Positions 761-61,931 of a DNA stretch of 64,000 bases are shown piece after piece. The DNA comes from Macrostomum lignano (Eukaryota): positions 62,001-126,000 of the forward strand of contig NIVC01000762.1 in assembly GCA_002269645.1 (NCBI GenBank), in the 5' to 3' direction. The notes under the pieces are model-generated. The model had not been told where the DNA came from. It saw only the letters and a list, made by a program, of their open reading frames with translations, and did no database searches. The translations under genes were made by a program, and so were the position numbers. Within the stretch, counting starts at the first letter, position 1. Every line of letters begins with the position of its first letter.

Positions 761-4643
<3,883 letters not shown>

Positions 4644-4959
4644 GCTGCGAGAGTTTCAGTTGGATGAAGTTTGACGTCTGGTAGAGATGAGGTGTTTTAA
4701 GATGTTTAGAGGCGTGAGCGACGGTACAGATGATTTTTAGTCAGAGAGAAGATTCTTCATGTTAACTGTTAGAGTTTTTTTTTACACAATATAAAGATAT
4801 TCTTTGTTGTTAACATTTCCTCATAAAGACATTTTATGTGGTTGTTGGAATCTCTGAGAGAAAATAGCATCTGAGCAAAGAAAAGCCGTGATGGTTTCTA
4901 GGAATATTTGGATAGGAATTCCCATGGTCTATAAATGTACATGTATAGATGGGATCCCT

Positions 4960-5240
4960 GGGATCTAAATATAGATAGGAATCCTCCAAGAACCTGAATA
5001 TCGATGGGAATCTCCAAAAATTCCAAATAAAGATGCGGGTTCCCCTATGATATAAATATAGATAGGAATCCCCCAAGGACTTAAATATAGATGGGAATCC
5101 CCCAAAAGACCTAAATATAGATGGGAATCCCCAAAAAATCTAAATATAGATGTGAGTTCCTTAGATCTAAATATAGAGAGGAATCCCCTAAGATCTAAAT
5201 ATAGATAGGAATCCCCATGAAATCTATATATAGATGGGCA
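4960..5240. repeat. Degenerate ~30-bp tandem repeat (TAAATATAGATGGGAATCCCC core)
   Basis: Direct. Confidence 0.8.
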
Positions 5241-6764
5241 TGCCTCTGGATTTAAATGTAAATGATAAATGTCAGAAATACTCGTAACTACATCCTTATC
5301 AAAGGAATCCCTAAGATAGTAAATATTAACAGAATTTAGTATCTGGTAATCTGAGAATATAATGTAGCGAAGTGGAAGTCCCTGAAATTGATAAAACTGT
5401 TTTGTTTGATAAAGTTTAATATTTCTGTTTATTGTTTAGTATCAATAATTGCAGTCAGTGATGTCTTTATTACTTTCTTTCTATTGTAAATCAAAACTAT
5501 CATTCTTCTGCAGATAGTAAACTTTTGTTTAAAAATTCATTTTTTTCCTGTTTTGCAATTTATCTACTTTAGCCCAGTGATTAAAACATTTAAAAGATAG
5601 GTAATAAAAATGTTTAACGCTTTATAATTTTTACGACTAAAATTTACAGTGTAGTTTTAATTATTGACTTTATAAGCTGAATATGTATGTATACTGCAAT
5701 CTGAGTGATGACGTCACACATGCTAAAATAGTGACAATCTGTACTTTATTTGCCACCGTTTTTTTAAGCTTAAATCGATGCATTATAACAAATAGCAGAC
5801 AATTTCTGTCTTAGACCCGAGATATCCTGAAAAGTTTACTTTTTTTGTACTGTGTGTGCCACTTGATTAATCAAAACGTAAATCTTTTATGCCTCATCTT
5901 TCCTAGATAATAGCTTATAGATTTTCTGTCTTCAAAGTTTTCATATAAAGATATTTATTAAAATATACATATTCTGTTCTTATCAGATTTCTAAATTTTA
6001 GTTTGATCGATTAAAAAATCTTATTAAAAAGCCATTAAGTTTACTTTCGCGGTTTTTGTTAATTTTGTTATAATTCTTAATTCAAGTTTCAAAAGTTCAA
6101 AAGTTCCAAGTTTCCATTTTCAGCACCTACCTCACATTGTGGACTTCCGATTTCAAAATCAAGCAAGTATGTCTTTTGCCAGAAATTGTTTCGCAACTCA
6201 AAAAGCAGAGCCTGTGTTTTTCAAAACCCCCAATACGGATTTTGCAAAGATTTTCGGTAGCATTTTGCTACATTATTAGTTACTTCGAAGTAGATAACAA
6301 TTGACTGTCTCCGATTTAGGCTAATATGATTAAGGGAGGGGCCAGAGGCAGGGGGCTGGGCGCACTTCAAGCGACATTGTCACTTAACCGGCGAGAGGCA
6401 TTGCTGCCAATTCCGCCGACTCCCCTGAGCAGGCACACAAGCGCGCGGATACGTACGCAGTCATACGCACAGGCACACACTCACACAGGAGTGCACAGTG
6501 GCCCCTACTTTATTTATCGTTAGGCATGTACATTTCACTGTGCCTTGATGGCTGCCCCTTAAGGGCGTTAATTGCACGAGCAGAGCCAAGCCAAGATTCC
6601 AATTTAGCTTCAAACTAGCAATCTTCGCCCCCCGATGGGGGACATCTGGATAGAATCTCTGTTCTCTACAATTAACAAAAAGACAGCCAAAAAATCCTTC
6701 ACAAAGACAACAGACAAACTGCTCAAATGAAGTGAATTGCAATAAGAAATCTTCCCAAGACCAC

Positions 6765-14357: not shown

Positions 14358-26139
<11,782 letters not shown>

Positions 26140-54542: not shown

Positions 54543-55373
54543 CAGAATCATGCAGAATCAATCATTCAGAATCATGACGATTTATTAAGAATCATGCAGA
54601 ATCATGACGATTTATTAAGAATCATGCAGAATCATTCAGAATCATGACGATTTATTAAGAATCATGCAGAATCATGACGATTTATTAAGAATCATGCAGA
54701 ATCAATCATTCAGAATCATGACGATTTATTAAGAATCATGCAGAATCATTCAGAATCATGACGATTTATTAAGAATCATGCAGAATCATGACGATTTATT
54801 AAGAATCATGCAGAATCAATCATTCAGAATCATGACGATTTATTAAGAATCATGCAGAATCATTCAGAATCATGACGATTTATTAAGAATCATGCAGAAT
54901 CATGCAGAATCATGTAGAATCATGCAGAATCATGCAGAATCATGCAGAATCCTGCAGAATCATGCAGAATCCTGCAGAATCATGCAGAATCATGTAGAAT
55001 CCTGCAGAATCATGCAGAATCATGTAGAATCAAGCAGAATCATGCAGAATCATGTAGAATCATGCAGAATCATGCAGAATCATGCAGAATCCTGCAGAAT
55101 CATGCAGAATCATGCAGAATCATGCAGAATCCTGCAGAATCATGTAGAATCATGCAGAATCATGCAGAATCCTGCAGAATCATGCAGAATCCTGCAGAAT
55201 TATGCAGAATCATGCAGAATCATGCAGAATCCTGCAGAATCATGCAGAATCCTGCAGAATCATGTAGAATCATGCAGAATCATGCAGAATCCTGCAGAAT
55301 CATGCAGAATCCTGCAGAATCATGCAGAATCATGCAGAATCATGCAGAATCATGCAGAATCATGCAGAATCAT
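54543..55373. repeat. Compound array: ~30-44-bp AGAATCATGACGATTTATTA units changing to a 10-bp AGAATC(A/C)TGC array
   Basis: Direct. Confidence 0.95.
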
Positions 55374-55746
55374 GCTTTAACTTAATTTCTAAGCAAGTTC
55401 CTTCTTTGAACTGACCGGGGGCAAAAGCTGTATTAGGGCTACAGCGAGGATTTCTATCCAGAGCGGGAATTAAAGTGTAGAGAGTACGGGGATGCTTAGC
55501 TGTACAGTAGACAAGTAAGGGAAACGCACTGTACGTCCGCACCGTACATTGAAGCAGAAAAAGTAGCATCTTATAAAACGAGAACTGTGCAGAAGAGTTA
55601 ATGTCTTTTTCTTGCTTACACACATCAGTACATCATTACTGAAGCTTTAGTACGCAACTCATTAGAGCTGTTCAGTCAGCATGCTCAAGCAGTATTAGTT
55701 GTACAGAGAGACATTTTTCAGTACTCTAGTTCGTACTATGATGTAG

Positions 55747-58700
55747 ATGGAAGCTGAAGGCAAAGCTCTTTTCACTGCATCCTGTGATGGTCATCTCGAA
55801 CAGGTCAGATCGCTTCTACATTGTGGAGCTTGCGTCAATTTCCGAAACGACAACGGAGAGTCACCACTGTGGACAGCGTCGCAGAATGGTCATCAGTCAA
55901 TCGTCAGTTTGCTTATCACATTCGGAGCTGATGTCAATCTTCAAGAGAAAGTCACCGGCTCTTCGCCACTGTACATCGGATCGCAGTATGGTCATTGTCA
56001 AGTTGTCGAACGTCTCATCGAAGCAGGAGCTAACGTCGACCTTCAACGAATAAGCGGGGAATCGCCAATCTACGTTGCATCGCGAAATGGTCATCACCAT
56101 CTGGTTAAGTCCCTAATCGCAGCTCAAGCAAGCGTTGATCTTCTTCGCAATACGGGCCAGTCACCACTGTACATCGCATGCCAGAACGGGCAGCGGCAGG
56201 TGGTTAAATTACTCATCAAAGGAGGAGCAGATGTCGATCTGCGGAGACAGACTGGTCAGTCGCCACTGTACATTGCTTCGGAAAATGGTCACTATAGAGT
56301 TGTAAAATCTCTTATCAAAGCACAGGCCGATGTCAACCTTCGGGAGGCTGTTAATGGCTGCTCACCGGTTTACATTGCATCGCAAAAAGGCCACTATCAG
56401 ATTGTTGATGCACTCATCAATGCGCAAGCAGATGTCAATCAAAAAAGTAACAATGACAGATCGCCTCTGTATATTGCAGCCCAGAATGACCACCATGGAG
56501 TGCTTGAGGTTCTTCTTAAATGCGCCCCTCTTGACCGCTCCCTGCACGAACTTCAGCTGGCATTGAATCGGGCTCGGGAGTTCGGCAGCGCTCGAGCAGC
56601 TGAAGTCTTGGACCGAACCATAAGAGGTGACGCACGGTCATGCTCACAGTTGCAAAAGACAAAAGGTGAGCAGATTAATTAGCCTTCCTGTAAAAAATCT
56701 TGAGCGTTTCAATTTTCAACTCTTTTGAGCGTTTCAATTTCTTTTTTTGTTTCAAAGCTGCTCCAAGCAATGATGCAGTGCTCAGTCTGCGGCTGAATTC
56801 AGCGCTAAGACGATCGGGCTTCGTGCACTCCAGAGCCGCCTTGCAGAGCGCTGCTGCCGATGTACTGCAGGATATCCTGAGGAAGAGGCATAACGACTCT
56901 GCGTTTTTCGTGGTTGGCAGTTTCACCGACGGCTGGGGCAACAGCCTGAGCAGTTTGGATGGCAGGACTGGCATCGAGTCTGATATTGATGTGCTGCGCA
57001 TCATCCAAGGACATGACATCCATCTCAAGAATCTGTGCGAGTGCCCTGTAGCTGATGATCAGAAAGTGGAGTATAATAACGGACACATCATGACACAAGG
57101 CTACGGTGAGAACCTATGAGCGATTCAACATAAAGTCGGACACTTTAATTACTTGCTTGACTTCGCAGCAGGGGACACAGGTCCGTCCCGGATGCAGCTG
57201 GGTGACCTTGCCGTCCAGCTTGGCGCCCCTTTCCAGCAGGCTTAGCGCCCCCTGAGACGTATGTCCACCCAAGCAGAAATCCTGTCTACGCCCCAGGCTA
57301 ACCAAGAAAAGCAGAGGTGGCTAATGTGAGAGCCGTAGACACCAAATCCAAGAGCCAACCAAAATCAGAGCCGTAGCCAGAAGCACTGGGACACTTACCA
57401 AGATCACCCGTAATCAACATGGCCTACTCAAAAGTCAGAGTCATGGGTCGGTTGCCAAAGTCCAGATAGCCCAACAAACGCAGGGCCTGCCTTGAATGCT
57501 TTCGAAGTGTGCACCTCTGGGTCGGCTTGTCAGTCAGGGATTGCAGCTATAGAGCATTGCAGACCGTAGCTCGTTAACCTGGTTAGTGCTGAACTCACCG
57601 TATAAAGCCAAGTCAAACAGTCGATTTTCATATCATCCGTCATTTACAAGTTAGCTGTGGCCAGCTGGGGGGAATTAAATCCAAATTTCAAGTGGGAAAA
57701 TATCTCTCCACTCTAAAGAGTACATAGAAACAAAATTACAAAGTATTGCAAACCCGCAGCATCGAGGCCAGCAGTCCGATTTCGAGGTTCGCCTGTGCGA
57801 CCTGCCGTGGATAAAGTTGACGCCCACCGCCTCTGCCGCTACCCGCCCATCGCGCCGCTGCTTGGGAACCGAGTCTCTGACTCAAACATCCCCCAGTCCG
57901 TTTTGCGATTGCTAGAGCAGGATCTCACCTCTGCCTCATCGCCCTGTCACGTGGTGCACGCAGCTCCTCCCGGAAAAGGAGGCCAGCAGCTCCGAGTGAG
58001 CACCAGCTTCCTGGAGAGGCGGTTGCTGCGGAGTCTCAGCACTCTGCAGGGCCAGCTGTTCGTCACGCTCAAGCAGCTGCTGAAGAAGGCCGTCCGACAC
58101 AACGGCTTCAGGTCCTATCACGCAAAAACAATCTTGCTAAGAATGCTCGAGGAGACACCGGCTGATCAGTGGAACGACCCTCGGAATCTCATGAGTCTCA
58201 CCAGACGCTCGCTGCAGATGCTTGAGAGCGACTGCAGATCAGACAGACCTGACGCCAGGATCATGGACCACTTCTTCCTTGACGATTCCGCTGTGTACCT
58301 GAGAGGCGTGGACACCTCATCGGCTGAGAAGGTGACTCGAGCGTTGACTGAGGCAGCCGATGCGGTGAGAAAGGCGATCGATAGGCTGCCTGAGCTGCTG
58401 CTGGAGTTCGAGCACAACCTGCGACCCGTCACCGACTCGGGCCGATTCCACTTCCACCCGTTTCTCATCTTGCCAATGATAGACTACCAAGCTCCAGTGT
58501 CAGCAGCGAAGGTGTGCGAGTACCACGAGATTTACAGCGTCGTGAGAGAGTCGCTGCTTCGAGTTTCAGACGGAGACCGAAGCTCAGAGTCCCGACAGCG
58601 TCTCTCGGAGCTGATCGGCAAGCTGCCAGACTGCGCCCGCTCGGCGAGAGAGTCCCTCAGAGCGCTGAACTGCCTGAAGTTCGGCAACCGAGAGGCTGCA

Positions 58701-59273
58701 GCGAAAGTCGTGAGCGACTGCAGGCCGTTCAGCGCGAGCAGAGGCATCGACTGGCCCGCTGAGAGGTCGGCGAGTGAGGCGACTGCGGACTTGGTGTGGC
58801 GGCACCTGAGGAGCCGAGACTCCGCGTGGAAGTTCTGCTTTCGATTTGACAAGCGGCAAAATATTCAACTGAAAATTAGCAAACCAATCGTCGAAATGTA
58901 TTTTCCACTCGAATTGAAAAACTACGACAATTATTTCTTTTTAAATTTTGACGCTCTGCTTTGGGCACTCCGCTTCGAGCTGATAGGATCAGGAGACTCC
59001 AGTGCTCAACACTGGATCCAGGATGTGGCGCACAGGGAGGATGCGGATGAGCAGGAGCTGGTGGTGGCTTCAGCGAACTGCAGAAATCTGGAGCTGCTTC
59101 GGCTGTTTCGCATCAAAAGCTCCAGGATGTTCGGCGACGTGCCTCGATGGCTGGAGGAGAAAGTGCGCAATCTGATTATTGAATCTGAACTGCTACTTGA
59201 GCCTGTGTCGAGTGGTTTAACTCAAAGCAATACCCGCAATGAGGCTTCAGAGTCAGACCATATTTGTAGTTAA
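55747..59273 (+). CDS. Ankyrin-repeat + Mab-21/cGAS-like (cGLR-type) nucleotidyltransferase; 926 aa, 3 exons
   Basis: Exons 55747-56665, 56758-57105, 57760-59273; both introns GT-AG and phase 1 (2781 nt). 8 clear ankyrin repeats (GxSPLYIASxxGH..VVxxLI.AgAdVn) plus a degenerate one; NTase motif VVGS...SDID; Mab-21 motifs [40 protein letters not shown]. Confidence 0.88.
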
Positions 59274-60044
59274 AAGATCAGACTCAAGAGTGCTTAAAAA
59301 AGCAGCCCATCTCACGCAGGTGACAACTGGAAACGTTCCACTTGTCTCTAACGTACACCGTTGACTCGTTTTAGACGTAGCTCGTACGGTAAAGTGCTCA
59401 CTTGACTTTGTTGAATTTTGCATTTTGCCTAAATAAGAGGTTTGTTTAGCCGCCCCCCCCTTTTCCTGGCTTTTTTCTTAAGCTGAAAGCCTGTATTCAC
59501 GCCTGTTGTTGTACTGTCACATGGCTATAATTAAATTTATAAACAAAGAATCCTATTAGAAGGAACGAAGCATCAAATTTGAAAGCAATAAGATAATATT
59601 TTCTAGCTCTTTAGTACAAGATCCGCTGCATCGTGTGTCTATTATGAGTTATGTCTCAGTGTTGTACCGTAGCATTTTTTCCATACACTACGCTAGTTAA
59701 ACAATATTGTACATTTTTCTAATTTTAGCCAGTGCATATCACTGGTACACTGGTACGAGTACCTTGTTACCCTTGTCATCACTTCAGCAATGAAAAACCG
59801 TACACGCACACGGAACTAACACAGAAGGAGTTATGCAGTATGTTATTAGGGACTCTATAAGACTATGAGTTTCGTTTTAAATCTGAACTTACTTATCATA
59901 TTTTATACGATAAAACGGCTTTTTAACAATTTTTGGACAATAATGCAAAACATACGACACCACCACGTAAGTAAACTTGTAGCCAAACTACCTAACTTAG
60001 AGAGCAGCTAAGTAGGTAACAAAGAGAAAGGGGCATCCATAAAG

Positions 60045-61547
60045 AGACAGGGGCGCCCACCAAGAGACAGGGGCGCCCACCATGAGACAGGGGCGCTCAC
60101 CATGAGACAGGGGCGCTCACCATGAGACAGGGGTACCCTGCACCATGAGACAGGGGTACCCTGCACCATGAGACAGGGGTACCCTGCACCGTGATACAGG
60201 GGTACCCTGATCCATGAGACAGGGGTACCCTGCACCATGATACAGGGGTACCCTGATCCATGAGACAGGGGTACCCTGCACCATGAGACAGGGGTACCCT
60301 GCACCATGAGACACGGGCGCCCACCAAGAGACAGGGGCACCCACCAAGAGACAGGGGCGCCCACCAAGAGACAGGGGCGCCCATGAAGAGACAGGGGCGC
60401 CCACCAAGAGACGGGCGCCCACCAAGAGACAGGGGCACCCACCAAGAGACAGGGGCACCCACCAAGAGACAAGGTGCCCACCCAAGAGACAGGGGTGCTC
60501 ACCCAAGAGACAGGGGCGCCCACCAAGAGACAGGGACGCCCACCAAGAGACAAGGTGCCCACCCAAGAGACAGGGGCGCCCACCAAGAGACAGGGGCGCC
60601 CACCAAGAGACAGGGGTGCCCACCAAGAGACAAGGTGCCCACCCAAGAGACAGGGCGCCCACCAAGAGACAGGGGCGCCCACCAAGAGACAGGGGCGCCC
60701 ATGAAGAGACAGGGGCGCCCACCAAGAGACGGGCGCCCACCAAGAGACAGGGGCACCCACCAAGAGACAGGGGCACCCACCAAGAGACAAGGTGCCCACC
60801 CAAGAGACAGGGGTGCTCACCCAAGAGACAGGGGCGCCCACCAAGAGACAGGGACGCCCACCAAGAGACAAGGTGCCCACCCAAGAGACAGGGGCGCCCA
60901 CTTAAGAGACAGGGGCGCCCACCAAGAGACAGGGGCGCCCACCAAGAGACAGGGGTGCCCACCAAGAGACAAGGTGCCCACCCAAGAGACAGGGCGCCCA
61001 CCAAGAGACAAGGTGCCCACCCAAGAGACAGGGGCGCCCACTTAAGAGACAGGGGCGCCCACCAAGAGACAGGGGCGCCCACCAAGAGACACGGGCGCCC
61101 ACCAAGAGACAGGGGCACCCACCAAGAGACAGGGGCACCCACCAAGAGACAGGGGCGCCCACCAAGAGACACGGGCGCCCACCAAGAGACAGGGGCGCCA
61201 ACCAAGCGACAGGGGCACCCTGCACCAAGAGACAGGGGCACCCTGCACCAAGAGACAGGGGCACCCTGCACCAAGAGACAGGGGCACCCTGCACCAAGAG
61301 ACAGGGGCGCCCACCAAGAGACACGGGCGCCCACCAAGAGACAGGGGCACCCACCAAGAGACAGGGGCACCCACCAAAAGACAGGGGCGCCCACCAAGAG
61401 ACAGGGGCACCCTGCACCAAGAGACAGGGGCACCCTGCACCAAGAGACAGGGGCACCCACCAAGAGACAGGGGCACCCTGCACCAAGAGACAGGGGCACC
61501 CACCAAGAGACAGGGGCACCCTGCACCAAGAGACAGGGGCACCCACC
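60045..61547. repeat. 20-22-bp minisatellite CCAAGAGACAGGGGCGCCCA / GGGGTACCCTGCACCATGAGACA
   Basis: Direct. Confidence 0.95.
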
Positions 61548-61931
61548 ATGAGTGTGATGTCTATGGTATTGAATACGAGCTATTTTATTTTGACTCTTGC
61601 AGCTCACTAACTCTGTTACTTTCTCTAAAACAAGACTGCGCATTTTCTTACGGCTACGAGCCGGATTCAAATATACAATCGTATGCACTTTTATCTGTCA
61701 AACCTGACAAACCTATTCCGACTCACTCCGACACAACAATGAGACGGGGCGCCCACTCAGAGATAGGTAGATAAACTTAAATCAAACCTCTCTACTCTTA
61801 ACTTTTCAATAAGCAATTTGAGCCTAATGTGTAATCAGATAAAGCAGAGTTAATGCTTTCATTGCTGTTTAGTTGACTGCAGTGGCAGTAATTACAAAGT
61901 GTATATTCATATCATTTTTTGCCTAATTCAG

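Follow-up and report, generated by a model that had tools for sequence, protein, structure and literature searches.

A three-exon gene of Macrostomum lignano joins ankyrin repeats, a cGAS-like nucleotidyltransferase with a complete active site and a C-terminal domain in a candidate ligand-gated enzyme

The closest described relatives of the gene reported here are cGAS-like receptors (cGLRs), of which ~3,000 predicted members have been surveyed (Li et al, 2023; PMC9980059). Some of them are described there as carrying fused ankyrin or TPR repeats, and the fusion with ankyrin repeats is listed as a recurrent architecture. According to this survey, nematodes and most platyhelminths lack cGLRs except Mab21-like proteins. 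Its domain table lists Ank_2 domains in the M. lignano proteins PAA86972.1, PAA45980.1, PAA68676.1, PAA67649.1, PAA58690.1, and PAA68216.1, and its screen with a ligand pool of poly I:C and dsDNA included five cloned ankyrin–cGLR fusions (ANK-cGLRs) of this flatworm (entries 89–93), which show the motif GSF.(E/D)GWG...D.D as the window protein does. Mab21L proteins, which lack the active site, are set apart there from the predicted cGLRs, and the M. lignano members are placed with the latter. The literature searched held no further paper on ANK-cGLR function and none on Macrostomum cGLRs. Here, we analyze a 64,000-nucleotide stretch of M. lignano DNA (contig NIVC01000762.1, positions 62,001–126,000; the window), which carries at 55747–59273 of its + strand a three-exon gene for an ankyrin array, a cGLR nucleotidyltransferase (NTase) domain whose active site is complete, and a C-terminal domain. 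Taken together, the product probably acts as a ligand-gated enzyme.

The ANK-cGLR architecture of M. lignano was thus catalogued in 2023, and the window gene adds a paralogue to it and no new architecture. The proteins named above, together with PAA57558.1 and PAA93208.1, share with the window protein the N-terminal Ank_2 and cGLR arrangement as well as the motif GSF(A/S/T)(E/D)GWG(N/S)..L(D/N)G....SDIDV. The window gene is nevertheless a different paralogue or orthologue, its best match in the non-ankyrin part reaching 78% amino acid identity. With vertebrate cGAS (PDB 4k9b, 7uxw, 5vds), it has in common the bilobed Mab-21/CD-NTase fold, the GS loop, the acidic triad, and the R-x-S-x-S..E and SYH-x-KT elements, at only 13–16% identity. 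The zinc thumb and the disordered basic N-terminus of cGAS are absent, while the window protein has three additions, namely, the ankyrin array, 10 extra residues within the activation loop, and the ~265-aa C-terminal domain. Coral Sp-cGLR1 (8gjy) shares the cGLR fold (Foldseek E 1.2e-5) but is distant in sequence; it is a stand-alone enzyme activated by dsRNA, and no C-terminal domain like that of the window protein is described for it. The next-nearest relatives in sequence are cGLR-TPR fusion proteins of ~700 aa (profile E ~1e-11 to 1e-13), which are Pfam-positive for Mab-21 and Mab-21_C. Their repeats, however, are of the TPR type and C-terminal instead of N-terminal ankyrin repeats, and their C-terminal regions do not align with the ANK-cGLR C-terminal domain. 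The developmental proteins MAB21L1/2 have the Mab-21 fold in common with the ANK-cGLR family; according to Li et al (2023), no functional active site is predicted for them, whereas the family keeps one.

At the level of open reading frames (ORFs), the gene appears on the + strand as an ankyrin-rich frame of 311 aa (55747–56682), a short frame containing VVGS...ESDID (56700–57119), and a frame of 492 aa (57795–59273). Splicing of 55747–56665, 56758–57105, and 57760–59273 yields 2781 nt, that is, 926 codons and a stop. Splicing is required because each upstream ORF runs into a stop a few codons beyond its donor, in line with the original prediction that the ORF track splits one gene into three pieces. 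Our re-splicing also reproduced the three ORFs, the coordinates, the motifs, the two phase 1 GT-AG introns, and the 926 aa of that prediction. Exon 1 (55747–56665, 919 nt, ending in phase 1), as read from the ORF and the sequence, comprises the start ATG and the ankyrin repeats. It is separated by intron 1 (56666–56757, 92 nt, GT-AG, phase 1) from exon 2 (56758–57105, 348 nt), which codes for the N-lobe of the NTase as far as its spine helices and first strands are concerned. Intron 2 (57106–57759, 654 nt, GT-AG, phase 1) is followed by exon 3, whose first part (57760–58409, aa 423–639) encodes the remainder of the cGAS/Mab-21 domain, as delimited by hhalign and matched to cGAS by Foldseek, and whose second part (58410–59201, aa ~640–903) encodes the family-specific C-terminal domain. 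The protein ends in an acidic tail (aa 904–926, 59202–59273) predicted to be disordered, with an AlphaFold2 predicted local distance difference test (pLDDT) score below 50, and the TAA stop lies at 59271–59273.

The splice sites are AAG|gtgagc and tttcaaag|CT for intron 1, the latter preceded by a pyrimidine tract, and ACG|gtgaga and acccgcag|CA for intron 2. In tblastn searches, M. lignano proteins align collinearly with the window over both junctions. The homologue P0001, for instance, places aa 271–388 at 56754–57107 and aa 388–860 at 57759–59183. At the junctions themselves, the homologue peptide GHVLSPGYASRPADQFKGSILRPAVD matches the window peptide ...GHIMTQGY..., and the window junction peptide starting with GY matches the homologue peptide GYASRPADQFKGS; the homologues are continuous through both proposed junctions. 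Moreover, two tandem copies on M. lignano contig NIVC01001606.1 have the identical layout of ankyrin exon, short exon, and long exon, with intron 2 at the same position, and a partial inverted third copy lies at 775–1856 of that contig. The environmental contig Ga0450804_4230032 (JGI metagenome 3300040801, 2.9 kb) carries a relative of exons 2 and 3 with 38–53% identity, and its second intron interrupts the same codon as in the window gene. From the in-phase GT-AG junctions, the collinear homologous gene models, and the 92-nt intron, the ankyrin and NTase exons are most probably joined in one mRNA. Intron 1, at 92 nt, leaves no space for a separate promoter of the NTase exons.

The N-terminal part of the fusion is an ankyrin array. 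Pfam Ank matches eight stretches of the window protein (E 6.9e-52) and Ank_2 matches with E 1.2e-49. Repeats 1–8 occupy aa 1–264 (55747–56538) in a 33-aa register and are followed by a helical cap or a degenerate ninth repeat (aa 265–297, 56539–56637) and a short linker to the end of exon 1, so that the 8–9 repeats originally counted hold. In the Pfam check proposed at that stage, the only other hit was Mab-21_C (PF20266), which scores 19–20 bits against a cut-off of 24.1 on aa 524–614 (58062–58334). Among aligned paralogues, Mab-21_C matches at E ≤ 1 in 8 of 8, with a best E of 6.6e-08.

The second part of the protein is predicted to adopt the bilobed cGAS/Mab-21 nucleotidyltransferase fold. 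The AlphaFold2 model of aa 307–926 has a pLDDT of 87 and a predicted template-modeling score of 0.87. Compared with the PDB by Foldseek, it returned 49 cGAS chains and Sp-cGLR1 (rank 38) among the 50 matches listed, with E ~1e-6 to 2e-5 and target template-modeling scores of 0.47–0.59. Further, alignment by hhalign of the family profile to a profile of cGLRs and human cGAS gave a probability of 99.8% and E 1.7e-30 and covered human cGAS 157–522 end to end, whereas alignment to human cGAS alone covered only the C-lobe. The family profile also recovers Pfam-positive Mab-21 proteins at E ~1e-11 to 1e-17. Homologue collinearity, the AlphaFold2/Foldseek fold, and the profile–profile alignment to cGAS and cGLRs thus substantiate the proposed fusion of ankyrin repeats to a cGAS-like domain, and the fold search by AlphaFold and Foldseek suggested with it found the cGAS/Mab-21 fold. 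The long ORF 57795–59273 as a whole had been described as Mab-21-like. Of exon 3, this holds for no more than roughly the initial 215 aa, since the cGAS-like domain ends at aa ~635–639 and the following ~265 aa form a separate domain.

Searches of PDB sequences with phmmer and with profile hmmsearch aligned only the Mab-21_C stretch (~62–78 aa including SYHxKT, E ~1e-4 to 3e-5). The catalytic residues were placed by profile–profile alignment because these alignments were too short. The invariant alignment columns confirm that the human cGAS sequence used is numbered in accordance with its known catalytic positions. VVGS lies at aa 358–361 and ESDID at aa 380–384. In the hhalign alignment, G360-S361 (56916–56921) corresponds to G212-S213 of human cGAS, D382/D384 (D382-I-D384, 56982–56990) to E225/D227, and D440 (57810–57812) to D319. 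R501/S503/E508 (RVSTSFLE, 57993–58016) are aligned with R376/S378/E383, and Y542/K545 (SYHAKT, 58116–58127) with Y436/K439. As expected for the fold, the first strand of the AlphaFold2 model stops just ahead of GS and the next one starts at D382. While GS and DxD are encoded in exon 2, the third acidic residue D440 is encoded in exon 3, and the catalytic centre is consequently assembled from two exons.

The window protein therefore carries, by alignment, the elements that define a cGLR active site, namely, the G-S loop, the (D/E)-h-(D/E) motif, and the third acidic residue (D/E). These positions are conserved throughout the family. Among the 92 family domains spanning the core, the glycine is kept in 90, the serine in 90, the first aspartate in 91, the second in 88 (plus one glutamate), and the third in 84 (plus one glutamate), which agrees with the originally proposed intact catalytic motif (84–91 of 92). 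If the nucleotide-contacting residues R501/S503/E508 and Y542/K545 are included, conservation amounts to 81–91 of 92. The ratio of nonsynonymous to synonymous substitution rates (dN/dS) against the nearest paralogues is 0.25 for exon 2 and 0.33–0.49 for exon 3, with no frameshifts and no internal stops. The coding sequence is under purifying selection, and the active-site motif, as read from the sequence, is intact and under selection as well.

The C-terminal domain (aa ~640–903) is conserved across the paralogues and is mostly helical with few short strands. Its pLDDT is 78 when modeled alone and high within the 620-aa model, and its dN/dS of ~0.46–0.49 lies in the range of exon 3. It has no Pfam match and no structural neighbor in the PDB (best Foldseek E 0.68) or BFVD (best E 0.60), the sole signal in the fold and profile searches being weak TPR-like noise. 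From the models, the domain appears to be a separate, conserved, and undescribed module, for which no relatives were found in Pfam, PDB, and BFVD.

The original prediction had considered the protein a candidate lineage-specific sensor. It does not stand alone but belongs to a very large paralogous family, as the search for paralogues suggested there showed. With the non-ankyrin 620 aa as query, 41 proteins were found, many of which bear ankyrin Pfam domains, and all 39 that have an organism name are from Macrostomum lignano. A profile search of 1.84 billion cluster representatives retrieved 876 proteins at E ≤ 1e-3 and 85 at E ≤ 1e-30. The latter, clusters at the 50% identity level, match the profile over much or all of its length; for ten family clusters the organism was looked up, and all ten are from M. 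lignano. Ankyrin repeats are present in each of the 11 long members scanned, N-terminal to the cGLR domain in most, and the sequence ahead of the cGLR match varies from ~300 to 950 aa. A few family models additionally contain a caspase, RING, or P-loop kinase-like domain. No second copy of the family was found within the window. Judging from these searches, the window gene is a single paralogue within a Macrostomum ANK-cGLR family that is very large and diversifies fast.

Divergence within the gene is uneven. Against the NIVC01001606.1 copies, the synonymous divergence (dS) is ~0.9 in exon 2 (56760–57104) and ~0.25 in exon 3 (57762–59183), and nucleotide identity is ~68% in the ankyrin exon versus ~88% in exon 3. 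By blastn, the window and NIVC01001606.1 have only exon 3 in common (88%) and share no repeats. Such a mosaic points to exchange between paralogues, by gene conversion or exon shuffling, and to the ankyrin array as the part that changes fastest. The 85 clusters, the variable length of the ankyrin arrays, and the stronger divergence of the ankyrin exon relative to exon 3 would be in keeping with an immune-receptor-like behavior of the family.

Several family members show organizations of their own. The annotated P0001 gene spans 19.4 kb on NIVC01001606.1 (6001–25445) and combines the ankyrin exon of tandem copy 1 (6001–6678) with exons 2 and 3 of copy 2 (22619–22984, 23991–25442). P0001 therefore appears to be a chimeric gene model over a tandem pair. 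PAA59752.1 (P0084), PAA80948.1 (P0181), and PAA93319.1 (P0097) are annotated in the order cGLR (with C-terminal domain), ankyrin repeats, caspase. In P0084, cGLR and ankyrin repeats (aa 1–706) form one tblastn segment at 3001–5313 of M. lignano NIVC01002235.1 (locus 3001–6651), and two introns of ~70–90 nt after 5313 precede the caspase exon. Because the gene is compact, P0084 looks like a genuine sensor–effector fusion and not like merged gene models. Gene-model annotation further gives M. lignano P0086 as an ANK-cGLR with WSC and a C-terminal RING finger and P0083 as an ANK-cGLR with an AAA_33/zeta-toxin-like P-loop domain.

We propose that the ANK-cGLR would be held inactive until a ligand is bound. 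Ligand binding would order the GS activation loop, upon which NTPs could be condensed at the D382/D384/D440 metal site. The resulting small nucleotide signal, most likely a cyclic dinucleotide, would in turn activate an immune receptor further down the pathway. Recognition of a ligand or partner, or else autoinhibition, would be the task of the variable ankyrin array and perhaps also of the C-terminal domain. For this part, a ligand-gated NTase that makes a small nucleotide signal and uses the ankyrin array and/or the C-terminal domain for recognition or autoinhibition, our confidence is moderate and only somewhat better than even. An ankyrin role in sensing or autoinhibition and a link to STING-type immunity, both already raised in the original prediction, are likewise inferences. 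The NTase domain is basic (isoelectric point 9.3), the ankyrin array and the C-terminal domain being near neutral, and may possibly bind nucleic acids.

A number of observations weigh against the proposed ligand-gated enzyme. No member of the ANK-cGLR clade has been demonstrated to be active, and the active enzymes of the published screen (cGLR-01 to -15, n = 15) include no flatworm protein (Li et al, 2023). According to the literature, cGAS and STING are missing from flatworms, with losses described for planarians and parasitic species. A human STING query returned only mammalian proteins in the best 120 of 321 matches, a result in which a divergent flatworm STING would not be visible. A scan of 10 ORFs of 162–1039 aa elsewhere in the window brought up no STING-like gene. 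On the side of the domain, PF03281, the Mab-21 NTase model, matches neither the window protein nor any of seven paralogues (0/7), and with the sub-threshold Mab-21_C score of the window protein, its family membership rests on profile and fold evidence. Moreover, the activation loop contains, between GS and DxD, the family-specific 10-aa insert which is not found in cGAS. Finally, the start ATG and with it the 5′ end of the gene are putative. An in-frame TAG lies immediately upstream of the ATG, with several further stops in that frame; nothing ankyrin-like is found in the same frame upstream, and tblastn located no counterpart of the P0001 N-terminal leader anywhere in the window.

The GS/DxD/D core is common to all Pol-β-type nucleotidyltransferases, and the product is not fixed by sequence alone. 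The protein might thus be an active NTase with another product, such as a linear 2′-5′ oligonucleotide as made by OAS, a cyclic trinucleotide, or a non-canonical nucleotide, which would feed a non-STING effector, or it might function in complex with other proteins, such as ANK-caspase proteins. Besides the undefined product, the reported absence of STING from flatworms speaks for this possibility, as do the absence of the M. lignano relatives from the active enzymes under standard cGLR assay conditions, the caspase, RING, or P-loop kinase-like fusions in some family members, and a C-terminal domain with no known fold match. Conversely, the nucleotide contacts typical of cGAS (the equivalents of R376/S378/E383 and Y436/K439) are conserved, the nearest structures found by Foldseek are cGAS and a cGLR and not OAS, and the human STING query, with only mammals among the matches listed, lends no support to a loss of STING in Macrostomum. 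We regard this reading as unlikely, though worth serious consideration.

A broader and still more doubtful idea is that the Macrostomum ANK-cGLRs form an NLR-like, STING-independent immune repertoire. Here, the ankyrin arrays would recognize pathogen proteins and the C-terminal domain would be a new module for regulation, oligomerization, or signal reading, with some members wired to a caspase, in a phylum otherwise described as devoid of cGAS-STING signaling.

A non-catalytic scaffold of the Mab-21 type, like MAB21L1/2, in which the NTase fold would be a protein- or nucleic acid-binding module on ankyrin repeats, is very improbable. It would account for the lack of reported activity in the ANK-cGLR clade and for the weak similarity to the Pfam Mab-21 models. 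However, the retention of G-S, D-x-D, and D in 84–91 of 92 divergent domains would be difficult to account for if the domain were not catalytic, Li et al (2023) place the M. lignano members with the predicted cGLRs and not with Mab21L, and a canonical Mab-21 protein, PAA76228.1, exists separately in M. lignano.

Even less probable is an unexpressed or decaying paralogue, that is, a recent pseudogene whose frames are still open, within a family that is expanding in tandem. In an exact look-up, neither the 311-aa ankyrin ORF nor the 926-aa product has a record in the protein collection. The missing N-terminal extension of P0001, the start of the ORF right behind a stop codon, the minisatellites on both sides of the gene, and the mosaic dS pattern point in the same direction. 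Against decay stand the 926 uninterrupted codons in three exons with intact splice sites, the dN/dS of 0.25–0.49, and the integrity of every catalytic residue. A reading of the locus as two separate genes was dropped as negligible in view of the in-phase 92-nt intron and the collinear homologues.

The ANK-cGLR gene is flanked by two minisatellite arrays, one at 54560–55375 (20/30-nt period, ~28–40 copies) and one at 60019–61552 (20/40/60-nt period, ~25–74 copies), which contain long spurious ORFs on both strands. Elsewhere in the window, the ORF 21023–24142 (−) encodes 1039 aa, in which an N-terminal part with Cys residues gives way to Thr/Pro repeats of the TTALPETT type that extend over hundreds of residues. 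It looks mucin-like and has no Pfam match. The ORF 16588–17367 (−) matches Pfam GPS and 7tm_2 (secretin/adhesion GPCR) and probably represents one exon from a gene for an adhesion GPCR.

At this locus, ORF-level annotation breaks a real immune-type gene into three pieces. The gene itself is one more paralogue in a large flatworm cGLR expansion and, as a single locus, leaves existing knowledge unchanged. The interest lies at the level of the family, as Macrostomum retains dozens of ankyrin-fused cGLRs with conserved active sites, whereas cGAS and STING have reportedly been lost from planarians and parasitic flatworms. In addition, all family members carry the undescribed C-terminal domain. Because M. 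lignano is a laboratory model, the ANK-cGLR family would offer a tractable setting in which to find out what is detected by repeat-fused cGLRs and which component responds to the signal they make.

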